Positions 4,008 to 43,700 of a stretch of 57,760 bases of DNA are shown piece by piece. Numbering within the stretch: position 1 is the first letter of the stretch; each line of letters begins with the position of its first letter. The notes beneath the pieces were generated by a model. That model was given only the letters and a program-made list of their open reading frames with translations, was not told the origin of the DNA and did no database searches. The stretch spans positions 1 through 57,760 of the forward strand of contig CDRNVI010000176.1 in NCBI GenBank assembly GCA_977017575.1, written 5' to 3'. Made by a program: the position numbers and the translations under genes. Source of the stretch: Paramoeba atlantica (Eukaryota > Protista > Discosea).

Positions 4008-7000
4008 TTAAGATTTTTTTCTAAATGATATAATACAATCTTCTGAAAGGTTCATTTTTAAAATCAAAATAACCTGCCAGTTCTTTCATCCTTTTCAAAG
4101 CAAGCTCATAAAGCCTAACAAGACAAATTTAAAAATGAAAAACATCATCAATTATAATAATAATAAATATTAACAATTCATAAAATAATAATAATATTAA
4201 AATAAAGCCAAAAAAAAAACCTATTATCATACATCTGATTTCGTTCAATTTTCTTCAATGTTGATGAATTATATTTCCTCTCTTCTTGTGGAAGACCGCT
4301 CCCCTTGAAGAAGAAGAAGAAAAAGAGAAAAATTAAAACAAAATCAAAACAAAATCAAAGAAAAATCAATAAAAATCAATAAAAAAGATTTTACTCTTTT
4401 TCTGGTTTTATTTAGTTCAAAAATCCGAATTGTCTCCCTTTTAAAAAAATCTTTAGAAATAAAAATTGATTTTTAAAAAACAAAAAAAAAAGAATTAACT
4501 GAAAAAAGTTTGGATATCTCGAGAAAAGAAGAGCTTCTGTTAGATTTAAATGTTCTATCACTCCAATCATGTCCAGTTCATCTGAATAACAATAAAGAAT
4601 ATGAGATCCAAAGAGAAGAGAAAAAAAAAGAAAAAGAAAGAAAAAAAAAAACAAAGATGTCGTTCTGCTTGTTTAAAAGAAGAAAAATCAGGAGGAGAAA
4701 CACATGGTTCTCCATGTCCACATAAATATAATGTTTGATAATTTGGAACAGGACATCCTATTGGTATTTCTGGAGAGAGGAAAGAGAGAAGAGAGAAGAA
4801 GAGAAGAGAATGAGAGAACAAAGATGAAGAGGAGAGAAGAAGAAGAGAGAAGAGAGAGAAGAAGAGAAGAGGGAGAAAGAAGAGGGAGGAAAAAAGAGGG
4901 AGAAAAAAGAGGGAAAATGAGAAGAGAGAGAGAGAAGAAAAAACTTTTTTGATTTTCCTCGAGGGCGCAACCTTCCAAACTTAGCCCTGGAAAAAGAGTT
5001 AAAATAATGTTCTTAAAAAATTGATTTTTCTCTTTTCTTTACAAATTATAAATATTTTTAATAATAAAAAGAATGAATATTATTATAATTTTTTTTCAAA
5101 ATTATTTTTTCTTAGTATTATTAAAACCCCAAAAAACAAACCTTGTTTCTCAAGACTCTTTCCAAACGGAGTTCGAAGAGATCTCCAATATTCATATTGA
5201 GAAATATAACGGTCTGTTGGATTTCTCATCATTGTAAACATACTTGGCTATCAACAATACAATTATTTTTTTGAAAATGAACCAAAAGAAAAAAAAAGAA
5301 AACAAGACAGTTTTGACCAAAAAAATTAAAGCAATAAAAATATAAAAATAAAAATTAATAAAAATAAAAATAAAAAATAAAACTAAATAAAGAAAAAACC
5401 TGGGGAAAAGAATGACGAGTAAAATTAGGAAAATAAGTATGTTGCCCACCACGCAAATGAAGAGGAGACTTGTTTCCATCATGTACAATCTTTTCTACCA
5501 ACTTTTGTTCTTGTTCAAAATTTAAAATATTTTCGAGAGATTCCCCACTTGACAGGAGAACTCGAGGATATTTTGCTCTGGTAACAATTTCTAAATAAAA
5601 GAAAGAGAAAGGGAGAGAGAGGTAATAATAAAAAAAGAAAAACTCGAATTTCAAAAAAAAAAACACAAAAGAAAAAACAAAAATGAAAAATTTACAAAAC
5701 ACTGGAATGAAGAGAACAGAAAAAGGTTTTTTTTGTGTTTTTAACCAAGAGGATGAAAAATAAGAAAGAAGTTTGTAAGTTTCATACAAACTCGAACAAC
5801 TATAGTTCAAGTAAACTTAATAGCAGCTGCTGCACCATCAAAACGACGGAGAAACATTTCTTCGTCAAAGGAAATATCAGGAGCTCTCAAAGAGAAGTTC
5901 AAAACTCTCCATACCACCCCTCAAAAAGCGAGCGACTGACGTATTGGAGAGTTTTGAACTTCTCTTTGAGAGCTCCTGATATTTCCTTTGGCTTCATGCA
6001 AAGGTTTACATATTGCTGAGAAATGTTTCTCCGTCAAAGGAAATATCAGGAGCTCTCAAAGAGAAGTTCAAAACTCTCCATACCACCCCTCAAAAAGTGA
6101 GCGACTGACTTTCCTTTCTTCGGAAAAATTCACTGATCACACTCCCCCCTCCTTTGGAAAAAAAGCCTGCAGAGGAGGATTCTTCAACAGGCCATTGTAT
6201 GTTTTCTTTCTCTCTTCTTTGTTTTCTCATCCAAGCTTGTCCTTTTTTTGCTCATTTTTTTTGAAGGGCAACAAATTGCAGATCGACTTGCAGAAGTTGG
6301 TGAAGAGGAAGAGGAAGATGATGAAGAAGATGATCTTCCAGCTAAACTTTTCCAAGAATTAGAAGCACATAATGTGATTCAGTTTGAGGCCTTTGTCCGT
6401 TCTGGGTTGATTCACACAAAAGCCTCAAACTGAATCAAGAATTTCTTGATTTATTTGACTCGACCTCCACATGCAAAAATTTCTGTTTTGCAACACCAAG
6501 CTGATGGAGTTCCAGTCGAATACACTTCCCACAAACTCCCATCTGCGTTATTCGAAGAAACTGAGCAAGCAACTGGATTGAGTGCAGTTGATGTAAGAGT
6601 TCCCCAAACAACAGTCTCAATTTTTATTGTCTTCTCCTGAGCCTTTGGATGAACATGCAATACCTGAAATATTACAATGGACAAAGAAAGATGACTGTCA
6701 ATTTCTGGTGGTTATTCTTAAATTGAGAAAAGAAGAATCTGAACAAGTTATTGTTCTTGACGAATAAAAAACACTTGTTTTCTGTTCTCTTTATTCCAGT
6801 GTTTTGTAAATTTTTCATAAACTAAAATAAAAAGAAAAAATAAAAGAAAAAATAAAAGAAAAAATAAAAGAAAAAATAAAAGAAAAAATAAAATAAAAAC
6901 AAAATAAAATAAAAAATAAAATAAAATAAAAAATAAAATAAAAATAAAATAAAAACAAAATAAAAACAAAAAATAAAAAAACCTAGAAAACCAAGAACGA

Positions 7001-21670: not shown

Positions 21671-24600
21671 TCACTCAGGACAATACCTCGCATGGCATTC
21701 ATCACAAGTCAAACTATCAACATAAAGCAAAGTATAATTCAAAAATGGACCACATTCTAAATCCCAACACAAACATTGGTACTGATCATAATTTGGAGAA
21801 CCATACCAACAACATTTCACAATTGGAGGAGTTGGAACAGGAGTTGGAGTTGGAGAAAGAGTTGGTGTTGGAGTAGGTGTTGGTGTGGGAGTTGGGGTGG
21901 GTGTAGGTGTGGGTGTGGGTGTTGGGGTTGGGGTTGGAGTTGGTGTGGGAGTTGGAGTTGGAGTTGGTATAGGCAATGGCGAAGGGGAAGGAGGTGAGAA
22001 ATCTAAGCTATTCCCATTGTCAGGGGGAGTAATATCTCCATGGCCGTAGAGAACAATTTTCCATTTTGTGATCATGGCATTGACAAAGATTCCTTTCGCT
22101 TGAAGTGTTGGGTTGACTGAATTTTTAACATAAAGGTTCCAATCCCCTTGTGCTGATTCACCAAAATGGCGAGCTGTTGTAAATTCCCAATCCCGATATT
22201 CTGGATAAGCTCCCCCCGATTCAACCCCCTGAAAAATTTCAATCAAAATCAAATTCTATTTGTTCAAACAATTGGTAATATGCAGAAGTAAAGAGTGATA
22301 CAAACAAACCCAAAGCACAGCCAATTTAAAAAGAAAGAAATGAGAACAGAAAAGAATAGAAGAGCAAAAAAAAAAAGAAAAAAGTTAACAAGACAAGGAT
22401 TCGAACCTTGGACCTTTGGGTTATGAGCCCAATGTGCTACCGCTACACTATCTTGTTTTTTCACAAAAATATTGGTGGAAACAGAATTGATCAAACGTGA
22501 GGGATGAAGATGGATCAGATAAAGGTTCATCAAATCACCGAAAGAGGGAAAGAACAAAAATACAAAGAAAGAACAAAAAAAAAGGTTAACAAGACAAGGA
22601 GTTGAACCTCGGACTCCGGCTTATGGGACCGGCGTGTTACCGCTACACTATCTTGTTTTCACAAAAATGATTGGGGTGTTTACAGTCAATGAAGATCACC
22701 CACAAAAGACGAAAAACAAAATAACAAAAAAAGAAAGAAAGAACAAAAAAAAAGGATTAACAAGACAAGGAGTTGAACCTCGGACTCCGGCTTATGGGAC
22801 CGGCGTGTTACCGCTACACTATCTTGTTTTACATGGAGGAAATTGATATGGACAAAAGTAATAAATGTGAAAAAGGAATTGAGTTCACAGAATCGCCGAA
22901 AGGTGGAAGAGGGGGAAACAAAACAAAAAGAAAAACAGCAAAAAGAGAAGATAACAAGACAAGGATTCGAACCTTGGACCTTTGGGTTATGAGCCCAATG
23001 TGCTACCGCTACACTATCTTGTTTTCACAAAATGATTGGGATGTTTACAGTCAATGAAGATCACAAAAGAGAAAAAAAAACACAAAAAACAATGATTTAA
23101 AGAAAATGACGAAAGAATTTTTTGCACTCCATATCAATGTCGAATCCTCGTTCAATCAAAGAGAAACAAAAAGAAACAACAAAATTAGAAAGAACCTTTG
23201 AAAAATCGAGATATTGGACTTCATTTCTCCACAGACTTGACAACTCTTGTCCGCTTTCCTATTTTGCAAAGGTGATGAGAACAAAAAGAACAGTTTTTTT
23301 TTCAAAAAATCAAATTAACAAACTTTAGTAATCATAAAAACAGGAATTATAAGATCAAGGCCCTCATCTTCAGGAAAGATAAAGAGTGAATCTGCAGAGT
23401 TAATATACAGAATGCACCTTGCCCCTAAAAAAATATTTTAAGAAAAAAGAATCCAAAAACAAAAAAAAAAAATTAAAACCTGAGTTTTGAGCATTTAAAA
23501 ACAAAGTTTGAATGGAACACTTACTCTGCTCCACATAAACGTGAACGCCAGCCCTTTCATCATATGGAGAACAATACTTACTTTTCGGAATTTCAGCCAC
23601 AGAAAAAAACGTTTCACTCCGTCCCTGCGTTCCAAATGAAGGTAGAGCAGTCACGTTCACAGGGTTAGACATAGATCTACCAAGAATAGATAACGTATAT
23701 GTCATGTCGGTAAGATACAGGAGAGGGCTAACGAAATGCGAGAGAGTCCCAGCAGGGGATTCTAAATAGATTCCCAAATTCTCAGACGCAGGGCATGCTA
23801 TATCTACAATGACTGAAACTTTCTCAACAATAAACGAATTTGAATAGAATGATGCAGTTGCACTCCCAATATCACCTGCATTTTTTTTTGTCAATTATAA
23901 GAATCATCAATCATCAAAACAAAAAAATCAAAGAAATTGAAGAAATGGGGAGTAAGAGAGCACACACAAAACAGACAGAAAATTCTCACCAGGAAATAGT
24001 TCTCCATTAAAATCGTCTTCTTCGATTTGAAGGAACTTCATTGGGGGTAATAATTTCCATTTGGATGCCAAAGCAACAGCAGAAGAACCATCAATCAAAC
24101 CATATCCAAAATTTTCATGAATTTTCTTTCCTGCCCCATTTGTTTCCCAATTCAAATCGGAGGTAAGACCTTTGTCAGTTGCTGTTTCAACCAAAATATG
24201 TTGTACATCTCTCCATGTCAACTCATCCCTCACTTCTAACATTAGAGCAACTACCCCACTGACCAATGAAGCGCTCACTGCTGTTCCTTTTCCTCCTTCA
24301 ACGCAATTATTTTCCCCTGTATCAGCCGAAAACAACTGCTTTTTGCTTGAATCTCCAGCTGGTGCAACAACCATTGTCATTGCACAATGTGATGAGTAAG
24401 AGGTAATGAATCCGTCATTGCTCACCGAACCCACGACTATCCCAAAAGGCATATTCAGGTATCCGTTCAGATTGCAATCAACTTTATCTTGAAAATCTCC
24501 GGCTCCCCATAAAAAGACTGTCCCTTTCCCATCCCGTCCATATCTCATCGCCTCCTAAATTTTCTCTTTTTTCAGAAAATTGAAAAAACTATTGAATCAA

Positions 24601-27600
24601 AAAGGGAAAAGGAACCTTCATTATTTGAACTTCTTGGGCATCTGGTTGAAGAAGGAACTGCGATTTCATGGCAGGGTCCAAGACACAAATACTTGTCTGA
24701 GAGCAGTGGTTCAAGGCATCAGTTCTGATAAATAATGGGCTTCTCAAGGAATACAATGCCCACGAGATATTCGCCTGTGATGAAAAAAGAATTAAAACAT
24801 TCAAAGTCTCAAAAAGGAGGTGTTAAAATCTCAATAAAATGTCAAAAAGATACCTCAGGAGCAACACCAACACCACAGACATCATTTGCATTTGCAGCAG
24901 CAAGAGAAGCATGAAAAGTCGCAGGAGAATCTCGGGGTAACGGAGCTTTTGAACTTACATCATAATCAACACTGTCACGAATATCAAGCATATTAAGATC
25001 AACATATTCGGTCAAAAAACCAATCAAGACTCCTTTTCCTGTCACGATTTTTTTCCAAGCTTGACCAAGATTCAAATTAATATCCTCACCACCTCCACTT
25101 AATCCCAAATGCCATTGTTTGTTAAAAATAGGATCAGAAGGAGGGACATAATAGGGTGACACCAACATTCCAGAGCCAGTAAACATTCCGTGCTCTGAGT
25201 TTCCGTACAACTCCAATCTCCAAAATTTTACTTTTCCATGGTCTTGATCAGAAGACGTGAGAGGAGACTCTGGAATCTCATCCACAATTTGAAGTTCCCA
25301 ATCACCAATTGTTTTCTCACCCCAGTACCGAACCTTTTTCGACATTATCAGTTTTACTGTTTTTTAAAAGTTTTGTTTTTTAAAAGAAAAACAAAAACTG
25401 ACCGAACACAAAGGCCACATCTGATATTGTGGGACGTCCGGTTTTTCATAGATCAAACCAAAGGAATAGAGAGCACCATGGGCACGTCGAGAACCTAGTT
25501 CCCTTCCAACTTGAGAACTAACAACATAGCTCGGAATCCAAACACGTTCAGCACCTGTTGTAGCTGGAGCGCTAAACTCTTCCTCAGGTGAAATTAAAAT
25601 CACAACTTTCGCTCCTTTAGCCTAAAAGGATAATCGGAATTAACTTTTTTTTTCGACAAAAAGTAGTGAAAAAGGAGTTTTCTGAAAAGGTTGTTACTTG
25701 AGCTAATAACACTATGTCAACATAAGAGCAGTCATGTTGAGCTTGTTCGATTGCCGACGACAGATGAAGGATATGAACATCAGCATTAGTTGCATAATCT
25801 GTACAAGGGTTCCTATTCAATACCAATTGTGAGAAGAGAAAAGAATCAAAAAAATTGAAAGAAACGAAATAGCATCAAAAAAAAAATATTGAGAAAAACA
25901 AAAATAAATTAAAAACCTGTTGTCGGAAAGGGGTTCATTGACATAGGAAGATTGAGTTTGAATTGTTTCGTCACGACCAATATGTTTCCCAAACGAATTC
26001 TCCAATCCTTGCCACATCCCAACTTCATCCCCCCAATAATCAGTGGCCGTAATCAAAATCTAAAAAAAAAAAAAAAATGTCAGATCGAAAAAAAAGAAAA
26101 AGGGAAAAAAAAAAAAAAAAAAAGACAAACTTTACGATTAATGACACTTCGAGGAGTTGCCAAAGTGGATAATAACCCACGAGGTGACCGTAAAGTAATT
26201 CTCAAGTCACCTGAATAAGGATGATCAATCGTCACAATCACACAAACATGCTCAACACTGATTTGATCAGAGACATGGATGCTTGTGACGAATCGATCTG
26301 ATGACCATTCACCAGATTCTTCTGTCGCACACAAGAGCAAAGGAGGAATTTCTGTCCATGTCTTGGCCACCTCGACCGCTTTTCCTGCATCAACGACCCC
26401 AAAACTATGAAATAAACAGAATTGATGAAAAAGAGAGAGGAAAAAAGAGAGGAAAAGGAAGAAAAGAGAGGAGAAGAAGAATAAACCCGTAATCTTCATG
26501 GACTTTCAAACCTCCCCCATTCGTTTCCCATCCTTTTGAAAGCTTTTTCGCTCTGTTTTTTCAAAATTTTGAGAACTTCACTCCAAAAGAAAAAAAACGA
26601 AAGAAAAATAAAAGACCCCAGTCTTTCTGTACTTGCAGTTCGAACTAAAATATGTTGGACATCTCGGTATGTTAACCTTGGGTTTGCCTCAAGCATCAAA
26701 GCAATTGTGCCAGCAACAACTCCAGCACTGCCAAAAAAAAACAAATGATAAATAAACATAAAAAAAAAATAGATATCTTTAAATATCAAGAAAATCCTAA
26801 ACCTGACGGAAGAAGAAGAAACATCCTCTGTACAACCCCCCTCAATTGGATTTGTAGTAGTGGCAATACCAGGCAAAAAAGATTGAGACTTTGCAGGAGC
26901 AACAATTAACTTGAAAAATTGTTGTAAATATTAAATCACAAAAAAGAAAGAAAAAGAAAAAGAAAAAAAAAAAGAAAAAGAAAAAGAGTAAGCAATCAAA
27001 CACCTGAGCAGCACATTGTTCAGCTTTTGGGCCTGGAATTCCATCATACCCAACACTCCCAACAGTAATTGTATAAATTGAAGAAGCAAACCCATTATAA
27101 TTACAATTATCATTGACCAAACCACCTTCACCACCCGAAACAACAACAATTCCACCACGTCCATCTCGTTTGTGTTGAACCAAATCAAGCAAGACATCAT
27201 TTTCCTCAGGTGAGATTGCCTCCAAGTTAAACCCTGTATCTGGAGGGGAGACGGACGATACCAACACATCCTTTTTGTTGTTGAGTTGAATTAATTTTTT
27301 TTTTAGTCAATTTTTTGAAAGTTGAAAAACAACAAAAAGCAAAATCTCAAAAAAAAGTAACAACTCAAAAAAAAAAAAAAAGAGAAATGACAAAATCAAA
27401 AAACAAGTGTTTGGAAAAAACATTGAACCTGTCCATGTTCAAATGCTCTTTTTAAGGCAAGAGCACGGTCGTATGGATCCATCTCCCAATCACATTGAAT
27501 AGCAGATAATGTGGCATTAAATGCGACACCAACGCTACAATAACTGCCGAAAAAAGTGAATAAGGGAAAGAGAAAGAAGAAAAGAAGAAAGAAGAAGAAA

Positions 27601-28255
27601 GGAAAAGATTGAGATACCCATTCATAACAGTTCCAAGGGCAACACCAGCAACAGAAGTCCCAGAAGATTTAACAACTTCAAAGGAAAAAGAATCACTCAT
27701 CTCTGGTGACCATCTGTATTTTCTTTCATTGAGCAAAAAGAAAAAAAGAAAAAGAAAGACCTTTTCATTGATTTAAAAGAAGTTTGAGAAGAAGAAAAAA
27801 CCTGTCTTTCAGATCAGTATTTTGGACATCGATATAAGAATCCATTACACTGATAATAATTCCAGACCCTAGAAAAAAAAAAGACAATGTAAAAGAGAGA
27901 GAGAAGAGAAGAGAAAAAAACAAACAAACAAAACTGAAAAACCTCGAACAAGAGAACGCCAAGCAGAAGAAACATCAATATGAGTAACATAATCAAAATC
28001 AGAAGAAAAATCTCTTGCAATCTCAGGCCCTAAATGCCAAGCTCTTACACTCATCGGATCTGCCCCTCTTCTTTCTCTCTCTATTTCTCTCTCTCTTTCT
28101 GTTTTTGTTTCTGTTGAAATGAGACCCTCGAGCCATTGATCAAAAGAAAAAGAAGAAGAGTTCGAGATCGAAGAGAGAGACACTGAAGAGAGAAAGAGAA
28201 AGAAAAAGAAAACAAAAAAGGAGGAGGAGGAGGAGGAGGGAGTCTTTAAAACCAT
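21671..28255 (-). CDS. Kexin/furin-like (S8B) protein with two subtilase + P-domain units, PA inserts, a PT-repeat stalk and a Cys-rich tail; probable pseudoprotease
   Basis: Unit 1: [106 protein letters not shown]. Unit 2: [54 protein letters not shown]. The splice phases I checked are consistent. Confidence 0.85.
21838..21970 (-). repeat. Coding Pro-Thr hexanucleotide repeat
   Basis: (PT)n run in ORF 21671-22252. Confidence 0.9.
22386..22457 (-). tRNA. tRNA-Met(CAT), type A (A1:U72, GGG/CCC anticodon stem; initiator-like)
   Basis: AACAAGA-TA-GTGT AGCGGTA GCAC-A-TTGGG CTCATAA CCCAA-AGGTC-CAAGG TTCGAAT CCTTG-TCTTGTT-A folds into a complete 72-nt cloverleaf. Confidence 0.95.
22587..22657 (-). 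tRNA. tRNA-Met(CAT), type B (A1:U72, C33, no GGG/CCC)
   Basis: AACAAGA-TA-GTGT AGCGGTA ACAC-G-CCGGT CCCATAA GCCGG-AGTC-CGAGG TTCAACT CCTTG-TCTTGTT-A, 71 nt. Confidence 0.9.
22758..22828 (-). tRNA. tRNA-Met(CAT), type B, identical to 22587-22657
   Basis: Identical sequence and cloverleaf. Confidence 0.9.
22952..23023 (-). tRNA. tRNA-Met(CAT), type A, identical to 22386-22457
   Basis: Identical sequence and cloverleaf. Confidence 0.95.
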
Positions 28256-28705: not shown

Positions 28706-29884
28706 TCTCTCTTTCTCTTCTCTTCTCTCTATTTTCTCTCTCCTCTCTTTTTAACTGCTGAAGATCCAGAAAAGGTGGGAGCGACCATACTTCCGTGTGT
28801 TTTGCTTGGGTCATAAAACTATTTTTGTTCATTTTCAGAAAAAAGAAGAAAAAACAAAAAAAAAAGAAAACAAAACAAAAAAAAAAGAGAAAAAAGAAAA
28901 TAAAAAATCAAATGAACACACACCTTATCACCCGCCTGAGCATAAACCTTGGTCTTCTTAGTCCGCTTTCTCTTCCTGACACTCTTCTCATAACCAGGAT
29001 TCGAAACAACTTGAACCAATTCCGCTCGATATAAAAGACCATTAATTTCCATCCCAAAAAACTCTTGCAACTTTTGGCGAGAGAAGCGTGTTCGTGGTGA
29101 GTCAGGTTTGTTGACTAACCAGGACTATTTTTGTTTTGGTTTTAGAAACAAAATTAAAAAAAAACTCTTTGTCTAACTATTTAACACACACACAAAAAAA
29201 AAAGAGAAAATCAGACAAAGGAGTGACTCCACCTTTTTGATACAACCTCTCTCCCCAAAAAAGGACAAAAAAAAGGACAAAAAAAAATCACAGAGCACAA
29301 AAAAAAAAAATCACAGAGCACAAAAAAAAAACAAAAAGAAAAAAGATTAAAAAAAAAAACCAAATAAATTTCAGATTTACAAAATCGAGGAACACATTCT
29401 TGTGACATGGCAACATAGACATCTTGTTGAACATAATCAAAAACATTAGGAGGAGGAGCATCTCGGTTCTTCTCAATAAAAGCTCTTCTTCTTCCTGCAA
29501 TACACATCTCCATTTCAGCGTTTGGACCAAGATACTTCTTGAAAATGTGTTCAAAGAAAGCTTTTGATTGTCTTCTGTCTTTGATCTATTTGAAAAAAAA
29601 AATTCAGATTCTCGAAAAAAAAAAAGTTTCTTTTTCAAAAAGAGAAAAAAGACACAAAACAACAAAGAGGGAAAAGAAAAGAAAAGAGAAACCGTTTTAT
29701 ACTCTTCAACATCAAGCCAGAAGAGAAAATTTTCATGCATCATTTCCGCTTCAAGAAAATCAATAAAGAGTTGTTTCAGATCAGGGTCTACGATGATATC
29801 AGGAAAGTGAACAATTTTCTTTGCCCCTCTGACATCATCTGCGGTTGGTAAGCTTGGTAAGCTTGGTCTTAAAGAAACCGACAT
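28641..29884 (-). CDS. RGS-domain protein (regulator of G-protein signalling); 3' end approximate
   Basis: IIVDPDLKQLFIDFLEAEMMHENFLFWLDVEEYK / IFKKYLGPNAEMEMCI..R..I...APPPNVFDYVQQDVYVAMSQECVPRFCKSEIY matches the RGS helical pattern. Confidence 0.85.
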
Positions 29885-37359: not shown

Positions 37360-38214
37360 GAGAAAGAGAAGAGAAAGAGAAGAGAAAGAGAAGAGAAAGA
37401 GAAGAGAAAGAGAAGAGAAAGAGAAGAGAAAGAGAGAGAAAGAGAGAGAAGAGCTAGAGTGAGTCGATTGTTCATGAGTCTACCGATTTTTGAGTCGAGA
37501 AAGAGAGAAAAGAGAGGTTCTTTTGAGGATTCCGAGTTGTTGAGAAAGAGAGGAGAGAAAGAGAAGAGAGAAGAGAAAAAGTTTTCTTGGCACCTTTTGT
37601 GGAGAGAAAGAAAGAAAGAAAGAAGAGATAGAGAAGGTGCTGATTCTTATTCTTATTTATTTCATTTTTTTTCAAAAATGATGTTTTTATTGTGTAATTT
37701 TTTGTGAATAAAAAAAAACTCAAACACTTTTTTCTTGTTTTGTGGATTTTATTCTTGGTTCTTCACCTTTGAGCTTCACCTTTGAGGCCCAGATCGAAGG
37801 GCAAAGAAAATTTCTGTTTTTTCGTTCCGTCATCAAAAAGTGTTTCCTCTTTCCATGTCGAAATACTTTTTCAACAATCTTTTGTTGAGAAAAAGCAATG
37901 GTTTTTTGACCATTCAGCGATTTCGAAAAAAATGAAACCAAAAGTTGGCATGGTATGGGTTTTTATACATTCCATTGTAGTGGCGGTATGGATCTTTTTC
38001 CTTTCTTGAAATTTCCTTTTTGTGTGTCTTTGTTTTTCTTGGTGACAACACATTTCCTCTTCATTCTGAGTTCTGTTCACCTCTTTTCAACGCCAGATCA
38101 ACTTTTAACTTTTGAGACAGTTCTTCTTCTTTTTTGTTTCTCCTCTTTCGATCTCTGTCTCGGTCTCTGCTGTCTCTCCCCCTCTCTGAGTGAATAACTT
38201 TGTTTTCTCAGAAA

Positions 38215-40494
38215 ATGAGCGAAGAAGAAACAAAAGGGAGAAAGAAAAGCTCTGAGGATGTTGGACTTCGTTGTGGAGTTTGTCTTGAAATAATGTGTTG
38301 GGAAAGAGAACCCCTGACTCTCCCTTGTCATCATTCTTTTTGTTTTAGTTGTCTTCAAAAAATATTCATTTCTTCTTCCTCTTCTTCCTCTTCACCTTCT
38401 TCGTCTTCTTCAGCAACAACAACTTCTTCATCTCCCTTTCCTTTTCCCTCTTCTCCCTCTTCCCCCTCTTCTCCCTCTTCTCCCTCTTCTCCCTCTTCTC
38501 CCTCTTCTCCCTCTCCCTCTCCTAAATCTCTCTCTCCCTCTTCTTCGTCTTTGTCTTCTTCCTCTTCTTCTTCATCAACAGCAACAGCTTCATCTTCCTC
38601 TCCCAAATCCTCAAACAGTGGTATTAACGGAGATTGGAAATGTCCAATTTGTCGAGAAAGAATTGAGTGTGAATCTCTCTCCTCTCTTGAAATGAACTTT
38701 TTAATTCCTGATACAATTGATGCTTTACTTTCTTCCAAAATATTGTCATCCCCTTCCTCCAATCAACAAGGTTTATCTTTTTTCTTCTCTTCTTTTCTCT
38801 TCTCTTTCTCTCTTCTCTTTGTATTTATTCTCTTTGTATTTATTCTCTTTGTATTTATTCTCTTTGTATTCTCTTTCTATTTATTCCTTTTCTTTTGCAC
38901 TTTTTTTTTGATGAAACTCAATCTTCAACAATAGATCAAGAATGTTTCAATTTTGAAATGTGCGGAGAAAGAACTCAAATGTTTTGTTCTAAATGTGAGA
39001 TGTTTATTTGTGAAACTTGTAACCCATCTCACAGTTCAAATGTTTTCACTCGAAACCACAAACGTGAACAACATCATCCTCGAAATTCTGATTTATTCTT
39101 GTTTTTCTTTTTTTTTCTTTTTTCCTTTTTTGTTTCTTTGTTTTCTTTTTTTTTTTTTTCTTTTTTCCTTTTTGTTTGATTGTTTAAAATTGATGATTTT
39201 ATTTAGGGAAGGTGGGTTGGATCTTTTGAAAAAGAAACAATGTTCAAAACACAATTCTCTCATTGTGAGTGGGTTTTGTTTTGTGTGTTGTGAGTTTGTT
39301 TGTGTTTGTTGTCTTCTCGAAAAACATGATGAACACAGAAAGGAAGTGAGTTCTCTTGAAGAGAGTGTTTGTAAGAAGAGAGAAAAAGTTGCGAAGATTG
39401 GAGATCGATTGGAGCATAGATTGAAGAAGATTGAAGAAAGGAAAGAAAAAATTGAAAAAGATATCAAAGATTTAGAAAAAGAATTAGAAATGAAAAGGGT
39501 GGAAAAGAAAGAAATCGAATTGGAGAAAGAAGATTTGAGAATGAGACAAGATACGATTATTCGGTTATCCAACACCCCCAGAGATGTTTCTCTTTTTGAA
39601 GAAGATCTTTTTTCGTTACTCCTCGAAACTGCGAACAACATCGTGAATGAATCATCGCCATTACCAATGAAAGGAGTGGTTTGCGGAGATGATGGTCTTC
39701 GTTTTGTTCGTTCATTGCGATGTGATCAACCTTTTGGAGTGAGTGTGAATCGTGTTGGTACTTTTTTCATTTGTGAAGATTATTTTTTGAGAGTGATGGG
39801 TCGCGAATGGAATGGGGTTGAATCAGTTGAAAAAGCAATCAATTCACAAAAAATGATTCCTGTTGATGTGGCAATTGGATTGAATGATGAAATTGTGATT
39901 CTTGATTGGGCAGAGTTTAAAGTTGTAGTTTTCAACAAAGAAGGAGAATCAATCAGATTATTTGGATCAAAGGGTTCTCAATTTGGACAGTTTAAAGAGC
40001 CTTATGGTTTGGTTGTTGATGGAGAAGGTCGAATTATTGTTGCTGATACTGAGAATCATCGGATTCAAGTGTTCAATAATGATGGATCTTTTCTTTGTTC
40101 TTTTGGTTCGAAAGGTTCTTCTGAAGGTCTGTTTAACAAACCTTTTAGTGTTGGGGTTGATAGAAGAGATGGGCTTCTTGTTATTTCTGATACTTGGAAT
40201 CATCGAATTCAGGTGATGGATATTGAAGGGAATTTGATTCGATGTTTTGGAACAAAAGGAAAAGGAGATTCTCAATTTCTATTTCCAAGAGGTGTTGATG
40301 TGGATGGGGAAGGTCGAATTGTTGTTTGTGATTATGGAAATAAGAGAGTGAGTGTGTTTGAGAAAGATGGAACGTTTCTTTTTTCGTTTGGGAAAGATCA
40401 CTTGGAAAATCCGAGTCGAGTTGTTGTTGATTCATTTGGTTCGATCTTGGTGCTAAACAAACAATCAGTTCAATTGTGGGAATCAAAAATCTAA
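38215..40494 (+). CDS. TRIM-NHL-type protein (RING, two B-boxes, coiled coil, NHL repeats)
   Basis: RING CGVC..LPCHHSFCFSC..CPIC; B-box1 C..C..FCSKCEMFICETC..H..H; B-box2 CSKH..FCFVCCEFVCVCC..H..H; coil; NHL repeats GSKGSQFGQFKEPYGLVVD..IIVADTENHRIQVF. Confidence 0.9.
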
Positions 40495-40723: not shown

Positions 40724-43700
40724 ATGTTTTTGTCTTCTCGTTTGTGGAGTTTTTCTTCTTCTTCTTCTTTCTCTTCTTCTCGAATCCAATCTCTTTCTCT
40801 TTTAAGAAGAGCTTCTTCTTCTCTTTCTCCTTCTCCTCTCTCTCTCTCTCCTTCTTCTCTCTCTTCTTCTCGAATCCAATCTCTTTCTCTTTTAAGAAGA
40901 GCTTCTTCTTCTCTTTCCTCTTCTCCTTTCTCTTCTCTCTCTTCTCCTTTTCTTTCTCCTCTCTCTTCTTCTCTCATTCCCTCTTCTCCTCTCTCTTCTC
41001 CTTTCTTTCTCTCTCCTTTCTCTTCTGTGTCTTCTTCTGAAGAGAATGAAGAGAAAGAGAAGAGAGAAGAAGAAAAGAGAGAAGAGAAAGAGAAAGTTCT
41101 TTTGATTGATGTTAGCTGTATTGTTTATCGGTTCTTTTTTTCTTTTTTTCTTTTTTTCTTTTTTCTTTTTCTTGTTCAATGACCCCATTTGCATTTAATT
41201 GAATTTATTTTTCATAATATTAACAAAAGTGGGAGTGAAATCTATGTCATTTTAATTTCGATTTAATTTAGTTTAATTTTTATTTTTATTTTTAATTTAA
41301 TTTATTTTTTATTTTTTATTTTAATATTAATTGAATATTATTTTAATATTAATTTAATATTATTTTAATATTCATTTAATATTAATTTAATATTAATTTA
41401 TATATGATGACAGGGGATATCATGCAACAAAGGAGGGAGTGAAATCTCATCCTGCTTTGAAATCATTTATCAAGTTTTTCATTTTTCTTTTCTTTTTCTC
41501 TTCTCTTTTTCATTTTTCTCTTTTTCACATTCTTTTTCTCTTTTCTTTGTTTCTTCTTTCCTTTCCCCTCTTCCCCTCTTCCCCTCTTCCCCTCTTCCCC
41601 TCTTCCCCTCTTCCTTTCCTTCCCCCCTCTTCTCTCTTCTCTCTTCTCTCTTCTCTCTCTTCTCTCCTCTCTTTCTAATAATAAAAAAAAAGGTCAACAT
41701 TAAAATTATTAAAAGATTTTAAACCAACTCATTTGGGTTTTGTTTTTGATTCCCAGAAAAATTGGAGAAAAGATATCGATTTTGATTATAAGTTCTTTTT
41801 TTTTTCTTTTTTTTTTCTCTTTTTTTCTTTTTTTTTTTCTTTCTTTTTTTCTTTCTTTCTTTCTTTCCTTTCTTTCCTTTTTCTTTCTTTTTCTCTTTTT
41901 GAGGAAATACAAAGATCAAGGCGACTCTTCAATTGACATTTTTTCTTTCTTTCTCTCTCTCTCTCTTCTCTTCCTCTCCTCTCTTTTCCAGAGCGAACCG
42001 AAAAAAACAAGAGGATAGATTAAGAGACGATTGGCCTCATATCAAAAAGGTTCCTCTTTCTTCTTTCTCTCTCTCCTCTCTCTCTTTTCTCCCTTTCTTT
42101 TCTCCCTTTCTTTCTCTTTCCTTTTTCCCTTTCTCATATCTTTTTTTCTCTTCTCTTCTCTTCTTCTCTTCTCTTCTCTTCTTCTTCTCTTCTTCTTCTC
42201 TTCTTCTTCTCTTCTTTCAGGTGATTGAAGTATTTGGAGGAAAAGAGATTGAGATAGAGGGATTTGAAGCAGATGACACAATCGCCTCTCTTTGTCAATC
42301 TTCTGCAAATTTACATTATGATATTGTTATTGCTTCAAATGATAAAGGTTTTCTCTCTTCTCTCTCTCTTCTCTCTCTCTTCTCTCTCCTTTCTCTCCTT
42401 TTTCTATTTTCTTTTCTTTTCTCGTCTTCTCTTTGTCATTCTTTTGCAAATTTACATTATGATATTGTTATTGCTTCTAGTGATAAAGGTCTTCTCTTTT
42501 CTCTCTCTCTTTTCTCTCTCTCTCTCTCTCTCTCGCCTTTCTCTCTTTCCTCTCTCCCTCTCTTTTCTTTCTCTCTTTTATTTTCTTTTATCGCCTCTCT
42601 TTGTCATTCTTTTGCAAATTTACATTATGATATTGTTATTGCTTCTAATGAAAAAAGGTCTTTTCTTTCTCTCTTTTCCTTCTCTCTTTTCCTTCTCTCT
42701 TTTCCTTCTCTTTATATTTGATAATTTTAATACAGTCATATTGATCACCCCCTCTTACTCTTTCCTCTCTTTCCTCTCTTTCCTCTCTTTCCTCTCTTTC
42801 CTCTCTTTCCTCTCTTTCTTCTTTATTTAAATAATTCCTCTTCAATATTCTTATTTTCTTATTTTAAAAATTAAAAAAAAAAATAGATTTTTGCCAATTA
42901 ATAAACGAGAGAGTCAAAATTTACAATCCACAAAAAAAGATAATGATTGATGAAAAGTATGTGAAACAAGAGTATAAAATTCCTCCTTTTTTGTTTTCTG
43001 ATTATTTGGCTCTTGTTGGTGATGCAGGTTTTTTTTTAGTTTTTTTTTTAATTTTATTTTAATTTTTTTATTTATTTAATTTTTTAATTTTTCGATTTCG
43101 ATTTCTTTTTCTTTTTTTTTATATTTCTTTTTCTTTTTTTCAGTTTTCTAAAATTTTCTACTTATTAAATCAGCTGATGGGATCTCAAAAGTAAACAAAA
43201 TAACAAAAAATCGACTTGTTGAGTTATTACAACAGTCTGGGGGAGTAGAGAATCTTTTGTCTCTTGCTGAAAAAGAACAAGAGGTTTTTTTTTTATTTTT
43301 TATTTTTTTTTTGTTTCTTTTTTCTTTTTTCTTTTTCTTTTTTTCTCTTTTTTCTTTTTCTTTTTTTCTCTTTTTTCTCTTTTTTCTCTTTTTCTCTTTT
43401 TCTCTTTTCTCTTTTTCTCTTTTTCTCTTTTCTCTTTTTCTTTACTGAATTTAACTCTGAATTGAATTTCTATTTTAATTTTTTCTTTTCTTTTTAAAAA
43501 TAGTTGGAAAATTCAAATGTAAATCTCACTCCAAAAGAGAAAGATTTACTAGATCCTCAACAAATCAGACACCACAAAAATTTGGTTTTTTTTTCACTCA
43601 TTATTTAAAAAATTAATTTCTTTTTTTTTTATTTTCTTTTCTTTCTCTTTCTCTTTCTGAAAATTAATTTCTTTTTTTTTTATTTTCTTTTCTTTCTCTT

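Follow-up and report, generated by a model that had tools for sequence, protein, structure and literature searches.

A probably secreted, non-catalytic protein with two kexin/furin-like heads, predicted from an intact intron-rich gene of Paramoeba atlantica

The contig CDRNVI010000176.1 of the Paramoeba atlantica assembly GCA_977017575.1, analysed over a stretch of 57,760 nucleotides (the window), carries on its minus strand, at 28255-21671, an intron-rich gene that joins in one spliced frame two kexin/furin-like protease domains of the S8B subfamily (heads 1 and 2), each followed by a P domain, and that continues into a (PT)n stalk and a Cys-rich C-terminus. Catalytic residues are lost in both heads while most structural residues are retained, the frame is intact in two assemblies, and fewer differences between these assemblies fall in exons than outside them. 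We consider it probable that this is an intact gene for a secreted, non-catalytic two-headed kexin/furin homologue, the heads of which serve as binding or coat modules. Pseudoenzymes derived from proteases are known, among them the iRhoms, CspC and those with a PCSK9-like binding role. Our literature searches yielded no account of kexin/furin-type heads that are dead throughout, have no prodomain, occur at two or more per chain and sit on mucin-like stalks. If the proteins are made, the convertase fold apparently folds without its prodomain chaperone and lends itself to reuse as an extracellular module without catalytic function, a use that the amoeba would have expanded into a family while keeping, as far as our searches reached, one working kexin. 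The finding opens no long-standing question.

The window is AT-rich eukaryotic DNA throughout, with short, T/C-rich introns. The gene model comprises 17 exons with GT-AG at all borders, in a single frame of 1265 codons that has no internal stop and is closed by a TGA codon at 21673-21671:

28255-27943, 27868-27802, 27713-27618 and 27543-27429, minus strand: exons 1 to 4
27270-27004, 26909-26803, 26727-26617 and 26552-26487, minus strand: exons 5 to 8
26404-26131, 26059-25917, 25812-25698 and 25621-25403, minus strand: exons 9 to 12
25333-24854, 24774-24616 and 24554-23990, minus strand: exons 13 to 15
23875-23733 and 22228-21671, minus strand: exons 16 and 17

The introns measure 61-158 nt, with the exception of intron 16 (1504 nt, 22229-23732), and the GC content is 42.5% in exons versus 30.4% in introns. 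Database and family searches were run per exon, and the joined model was used for frame checks and for local alignments to fetched proteins. A raw open reading frame (ORF) around exon 3 had given a methane-monooxygenase match in the PDB, which was spurious and came from intron-derived residues; exact exon ranges were used thereafter. Peptidase_S8 (PF00082) and P_proprotein (PF01483) were each matched twice along the minus strand by exon-wise Pfam searches, in agreement with the original prediction, made from the DNA sequence, of two complete S8B-plus-P units in one spliced frame. The borders predicted with least certainty are the donor of exon 16 (23733) and the start codon (28255). Skipping of exon 10 breaks the frame, and the exon 10/11 and 12/13 junctions are backed by local alignments of the PA-like insert region described below to the database homologues P0006 and P0001 and to the Physarum kexin P0167; the junction PLCS/VRYWGEK pairs with FMSTRHWGES of P0006 without a gap.

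From the N- to the C-terminus the predicted protein consists of a hydrophobic N-terminus, head 1, P domain 1 split by the PA-like insert, head 2, P domain 2, the (PT)n stalk and a Cys module, the last two corresponding to the stalk and Cys-rich end that had been read from the DNA at first:

28066..28255, minus strand: N-terminal leader, residues 1-63 (hydropathy, motif scan)
26347..28063, minus strand: head 1, kexin/furin-like S8, residues 65-400, exons 1-9 (Pfam, PDB, multiple sequence alignment, profile)
26131..26289, minus strand: N-terminal half of P domain 1, residues 420-472, exon 9 (Pfam P_proprotein positions 1-37, E=4.7e-9)
25424..26059, minus strand: PA-like insert, residues 473-624, exons 10-12 (local phmmer)
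25202..25423, minus strand: C-terminal half of P domain 1, residues 625-675, end of exon 12 and start of exon 13 (P_proprotein 54-85; Kex2 P-domain alignment)
24048..25138, minus strand: head 2, kexin/furin-like S8, residues 697-1013, exons 13-15 (PDB, multiple sequence alignment, profile)
22043..23852, minus strand: P domain 2, residues 1041-1142, exons 16-17 (P_proprotein 1-30 on exon 16 and 44-73 on exon 17; alignment to P0108)
21824..21997, minus strand: (PT)n stalk, residues 1158-1215 (direct reading)
21674..21823, minus strand: C-terminal Cys module, residues 1216-1265, 50 residues with 8 Cys (profile, alignment to contig C156)

The P_proprotein matches fall in exons 9 and 13 for the first unit and in exons 16 and 17 for the second, so that a P domain follows each catalytic domain as in the S8B subfamily; P domain 2 is unbroken at the protein level although intron 16 splits its coding sequence. 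The closest solved structures are those of furin and Kex2 (exon 15 to furin, E=1.2e-35; exon 5 to Kex2, E=1.1e-12; exon 13 to Kex2, E=3e-9, in PDB searches), and in local alignment the S8B profile covers residues 54-409 and 695-1022, which places both heads as kexin/furin homologues. The two heads are 31.5% identical to each other.

The residues aligned with the catalytic positions were obtained from a MAFFT alignment with 29 S8B domains and from a profile built from 15 members with an intact triad, and the two agree at each of the following places:

27842-27840, minus strand: Asp position of head 1, Asp kept (VMDSY)
27664-27662, minus strand: His position of head 1, Ser (KSSGT)
27129-27127, minus strand: oxyanion Asn position of head 1, Glu (SGGEGG)
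26810-26808, minus strand: Ser position of head 1, Ser kept, with GTS now SSS
25012-25010, minus strand: Asp position of head 2, Thr (FLTEY)
24925-24923, minus strand: His position of head 2, Pro (DSPAT)
24497-24495, minus strand: oxyanion Asn position of head 2, Asp (AGDFQ)
24281-24279, minus strand: Ser position of head 2, Ala (GTAVS)

In the order Asp, His, Asn and Ser, these positions are D, S, E, S in head 1 and T, P, D, A in head 2, so that neither has the triad plus oxyanion residue of S8B peptidases. The first reading of the DNA had already reported the SGT and Glu substitutions of head 1 beside a kept Asp and Ser, and the LTE, PAT and GTA losses of head 2; to these we add the change of GTS to SSS in the former and that of the oxyanion Asn to Asp in the latter. 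HMMER alignments to furin and Kex2 concur for the Asp, Asn and Ser of head 2 and for the Asn of head 1. A single HMMER pairwise alignment, to Kex2, places the His of TFH in head 2, 5 residues downstream, opposite the catalytic His by means of a 5-residue gap. This pairing was rejected, as the ungapped register from CGVGV, the profile and the multiple sequence alignment all disagree with it and the other three residues are missing in any case; the alignments to Kex2, furin and S8 profiles that had been proposed as a check, now run, restore no His/Ser set in either head.

Despite these losses the fold appears to be kept. From 94 active S8B domains we derived 44 profile columns with at least 90% invariance, of which 33 are retained in head 1 and 32 in head 2. 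When 15 of the 44 were grouped by us as active-site motifs (DDG, HGT..G, SWG, GNG and GTS..P) and the remaining 29 as other columns, the active-site columns were found to be kept in 7/15 cases by head 1 and 4/15 by head 2, and the others in 26/29 and 28/29 cases, respectively. In the multiple sequence alignment both heads have four Cys at the furin disulfide positions, which presumably pair as the two catalytic-domain disulfides of furin, and the Asp/Asp/Asn positions of the first calcium site are likewise present in both. The comparison supports the earlier proposal that neither head has a workable triad, to judge from its residues, and that catalysis has decayed by a different route in each while the fold was retained.

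The groove that would hold a substrate has changed as well. In place of the SWG strand, which pairs with the substrate backbone, head 1 has SVS and head 2 has VLD. Both heads show Asn for the Asp of CN(C/Y)DGY, and the second Asp of DDG is Ser in head 1 and Glu in head 2; the Asp of SWGPxDDG is retained by head 1 alone (SPPDTG), head 2 having Met there. By the structures of furin and Kex2, we take the acidic residue of DDG to belong to the S2 pocket and those of CN(C/Y)DGY and SWGPxDDG to the S1 pocket. These changes bear on an alternative in which the heads would be a decoy, a substrate trap or a regulator of a live kexin, either holding dibasic substrates or inhibitors uncut or escorting and regulating the kexin encoded on contig C139 of the same genome, in the manner of CspC and CspA towards CspB. 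The retained fold and structural residues would suit such a role, as would the surviving SPPDTG Asp of head 1 together with a neighbouring Asp and Glu, which in furin bind calcium beside S1, a furin-type RERR site in the leader, and the report that subtilisin-family pseudoproteases regulate an active relative (PMC7200643). However, the loss of the SWG strand and of most S1/S2 acidic residues weakens the idea of a trap, and the gene, on contig C176, does not lie beside the live kexin; thus we regard this alternative as unlikely. Of the secreted pseudo-convertase acting as decoy or trap that was suggested at the outset, the pseudo-convertase stands, intact and constrained, whereas the decoy or trap finds little in the substrate-binding residues.

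Evidence that the gene is maintained comes from a second assembly, ENA ERZ24900291, whose contig ctg3726l (L011) matches the window at ~99% identity. In the alignment of the gene, 7002 bases long, the 3798 bp of exons show 6 substitutions (3 synonymous and 3 nonsynonymous) and 0 indels between the assemblies, versus 24 substitutions and 12 indel events in the 3204 bp of non-exonic sequence (Fisher p=1.6e-4 for the substitutions). The frame is kept in both, with no stop or frameshift over 3795 coding bases. An intact frame in two assemblies, the depletion of differences in exons and the conserved columns together indicate that the gene is maintained and, as far as sequence can tell, it would qualify as a subtilase pseudoprotease, with a substituted triad and a fold kept by selection.

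Several points weigh against this interpretation. Between the two assemblies the ratio of nonsynonymous to synonymous differences (pN/pS) is 0.30, a value drawn from the 6 substitutions that does not reach significance by itself (p=0.14). The contrast between exons and non-exonic sequence may be inflated, as low-complexity introns may mutate or be mis-assembled more. The start codon and the signal peptide lie within T/C-rich low-complexity sequence. In a maximum-likelihood tree of 47 S8B domains the two heads have very long branches (1.98 and 2.31; median 0.79), as relaxed selection would also give; they have no supported position there and long-branch attraction is flagged, and for this reason we make no claim on the origin or orthology of the heads. 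No transcript or annotated protein of this gene was found in the protein databases searched, splicing and expression being predictions. In a library of 1.84 billion representatives, its sole entry is the 206-residue ORF of exon 15, taken from ERZ24900291; a full-length protein sought with P0006 as query (517-1645 residues admitted) was not found for this gene, and exact look-ups of four other ORFs were blank. Finally, the analysis shows the architecture, the residue states and the constraint, whereas the function of the heads is inferred.

The missing transcript, the very long branches, the complete loss of catalytic function and the low-complexity leader would all be expected of a decaying pseudogene, a duplicated kexin array without a useful product. 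Such an origin is difficult to reconcile with 17 exons and 3795 coding bases free of stops and frameshifts in two assemblies, with losses that cluster in active-site motifs while 26-28 of the 29 other invariant columns are kept, or with exon substitutions ~5-fold below the non-exonic level and exon indels at zero, and we judge it improbable. It is more improbable still that head 1 would keep some unconventional hydrolytic activity: its Asp (VMDSY) and aligned Ser are present, but its KSSGTSVAG segment has no His at or near the required position, Glu stands in place of the oxyanion Asn and SSS in place of GTS, and the SWG strand has gone; mutation of the triad is reported to abolish subtilase function, as cited in PMC5520436. 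A wrong joining of two adjacent single-headed genes, conceivable in that the splicing is predicted only, is likewise very improbable, since in exon 13 (25333-24854) a single uninterrupted ORF runs from the final strands of P domain 1 (WRLELYG) through a 21-residue linker without stop, start signal or leader into the beginning of head 2, so that the heads belong to one gene, and P0006 and P0001 show the same head-to-tail junction.

Two features of the predicted protein had escaped the original prediction, namely a missing prodomain and the PA-like insert. The leader contains the only strongly hydrophobic 19-mer of the protein (residues ~9-31), signal-peptide-like, followed by a charged linker that ends in RERR, and by hydropathy there is no transmembrane (TM) segment outside the N-terminus of the 1265-residue model. 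The RERR (residues 60-63, 28066-28077) is the sole R-x-[KR]-R of the model and stands directly before ADP..WHL of head 1, where the prodomain is normally cut; it may be a site for a live kexin or a chance occurrence within a GA-rich low-complexity stretch. A search of the 45.7-Mb genome with the S8_pro-domain family (PF16470) matched C139 only and nothing in the window, and no prodomain-like ORF was found in the window upstream of exon 1, so the prodomain of the S8B subfamily is missing here. The C139 kexin, the sole PF16470 match of the genome, has in contrast a signal peptide, a prodomain, an RRRVRR junction and the full D/H/N/S set.

The insert of ~150 residues that divides P domain 1 aligns locally to residues 437-566 of P0006 (phmmer, E=2.4e-8) and to all 4 inter-head regions of P0001, where the aligned segment 1998-2091 overlaps a Pfam PA match at 1993-2045. 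In the Physarum kexin P0167, which bears a PF02225 annotation, the P domain is interrupted by an insert at the corresponding place. Pfam PA (PF02225) gave no match on exons 10, 11 and 12 scanned singly, and the insert is for this reason named PA-like rather than PA.

In the reading that we prefer, that of a secreted pseudo-convertase with binding or coat modules, the predicted protein itself would not cut. The two heads would act as folded modules kept off an anchor by the Pro/Thr stalk, which is likely to be O-glycosylated, the Cys module may attach or oligomerise the protein, and the RERR site may be cut in trans by the live C139 kexin.

The Cys module, with a pattern of approximately CC-x-Y..YD..QC..C..F..L..C..C, links the gene to a cluster of kexin-like genes on contig C156. 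It aligns with four tandem copies that end the paralogue at C156:136103-136973, where they likewise stand behind a P-domain end and a PT stalk. A profile from these five copies finds 33 places in the genome, the 1 of this gene and 32 on C156, all inside the kexin-like cluster (about 136-173 kb, 212 kb and 252-276 kb), whose genes end in 1-4 or more copies. An AlphaFold (AF2) prediction of the module is beta-beta-beta-alpha with a pLDDT of 85.7, and no relative was found in the PDB (best Foldseek E=1.4, best VIA Z=4.0), in Pfam, in the atlas or by word search; it is thus a candidate for a new domain, for which we detected no relative beyond this genome. Six-frame scoring of the C156 kexin-like exons, limited to the His and Asn columns by the small size of the exons, shows the His replaced in 3/3 scorable cases. 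Our gene has the layout of these stalked dead kexins, a prodomain-less dead head, a P domain, a PT stalk and the CC-x-Y Cys module, and differs from them in lying on another contig (C176) and in having two heads, a PA-like insert and a single Cys module.

Relatives with several heads also exist outside this genome, and several multi-headed proteins are among the database matches of exon 15. The Styela clava protein XP_039253008 (P0003/P0151), named 'furin-like protease 2', has two S8B-plus-P units with NLNS and SVNG at the D/H/N/S positions, so that two-headed dead convertases occur in an animal too. By profile alignment, P0006 has two dead heads (GIND and GLDD) and P0001 has five, with Asp and Ser missing in every one; both carry the PA-like insert. 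The bacterial P0005 has two live heads. P0001 and head 2 are reciprocal best relatives (41-42% identity); the former comes from contig ctg3944l (L001) of ERZ24900291, the same assembly as the twin contig of the window. With its flanking ORFs included, the L001 gene (2577-16369) would have seven or more dead kexin heads; its P domains bear PA-like inserts, and it also has a short Pro-rich stalk and would end in a TM helix. An amoeba-style intron lies at 5650-5866. Neither DNA nor protein search recovered L001 from the P. atlantica genome. The Styela protein, P0006 and P0001 thus resemble our gene in their 2-5 S8B-plus-P units per chain and their dead heads; they are however at most 42% identical to exon 15, none has a PT stalk with a Cys module, and the gene of P0001 ends in a TM helix. 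The claim that no protein of this architecture has been described therefore holds for the literature searched, where we found none, and does not extend to the databases, in which these three multi-headed dead kexins stand unannotated.

Among the fetched proteins the best local match of head 1 is P0108, a complete Paramoeba aestuarina MMETSP transcript encoding a signal peptide, a dead head, a P domain, a PT stalk and a TM helix, and at least one such relative is thus transcribed in a named Paramoeba. It shares with our gene the prodomain-less dead head, the P domain and the PT stalk, and differs by its TM helix.

We put forward, with considerable doubt, that the stalked dead kexins of this amoeba, with one to many heads, form a lineage-specific surface system. 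Its heads, some with PA-like inserts, would have diversified into modules that recognise bacterial prey or symbionts or that build the cell coat, anchored by the previously unseen disulfide module and matured by the sole live kexin at a vestigial prodomain site. If this were true, the convertase fold would be newly used as a receptor scaffold.

Compared with furin and Kex2 (PDB 1P8J, 1OT5, 1R64 and 2ID4), the predicted protein has the same succession of catalytic fold and P domain, the disulfide Cys and most invariant structural columns; it differs in lacking a prodomain, in having two heads per chain, in the lost triad residues and changed substrate strand and S1/S2 acidic residues, in the PA-like insert, and in a PT stalk and new Cys module in place of the furin-type Cys-rich region or TM helix. 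The nearest described analogues in function are CspBA/CspC, PIMMS2 and PCSK9, none of them an orthologue. In Clostridioides difficile, CspBA and CspC have subtilase domains with substituted triads in a non-cutting role, and CspBA joins two subtilase domains in one frame (PMC7200643). CspBA combines a live and a dead head, keeps its prodomains, belongs to S8A, is bacterial, has no P domain and serves spore germination, whereas in our gene both heads are dead, S8B and prodomain-less; orthology to the Csp proteins is contradicted by best matches to S8B furin/Kex2, the presence of the P domain and the missing prodomain. PIMMS2 of Plasmodium is a protist surface protein whose subtilisin-like domain lacks the HGT and GTS motifs and which was proposed to be a pseudoenzyme (PMC5520436); unlike our gene it is apicomplexan, TM-anchored and single-headed, without a P domain. 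For PCSK9, a secreted protein of the subtilase family, the known function, binding of the LDL receptor, needs no catalysis (PMC13276728, PMC8551645); it differs from our gene in belonging to the proteinase-K subfamily, in keeping the triad for self-processing and a bound prodomain, and in its one head. Literature searches for dead or multi-headed kexin-type proteins, pseudo-convertases and Paramoeba kexins, whose results were partly dominated by PCSK9, returned none, and the one paper found on P. atlantica has as its subject the associated vibrios and not the amoeba genome.

Intron 16 houses four genes for tRNA-Met, likewise absent from the original prediction, which were located by ARAGORN:

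22386-22457, 22587-22657, 22758-22828 and 22952-23023, minus strand (that of the gene): four tRNA-Met genes

They are of two sequence types in the order A-B-B-A and form no part of the protein; their copy number is 4 in the window versus 3 in L011. The neighbouring genes are unrelated to the kexin homologue: an RGS-domain gene lies just upstream at 29288-29884 on the minus strand, and a RING plus NHL-repeat gene (38200-40494) and a 5'-3' exonuclease-like ORF (41933-42721) are found on the plus strand.

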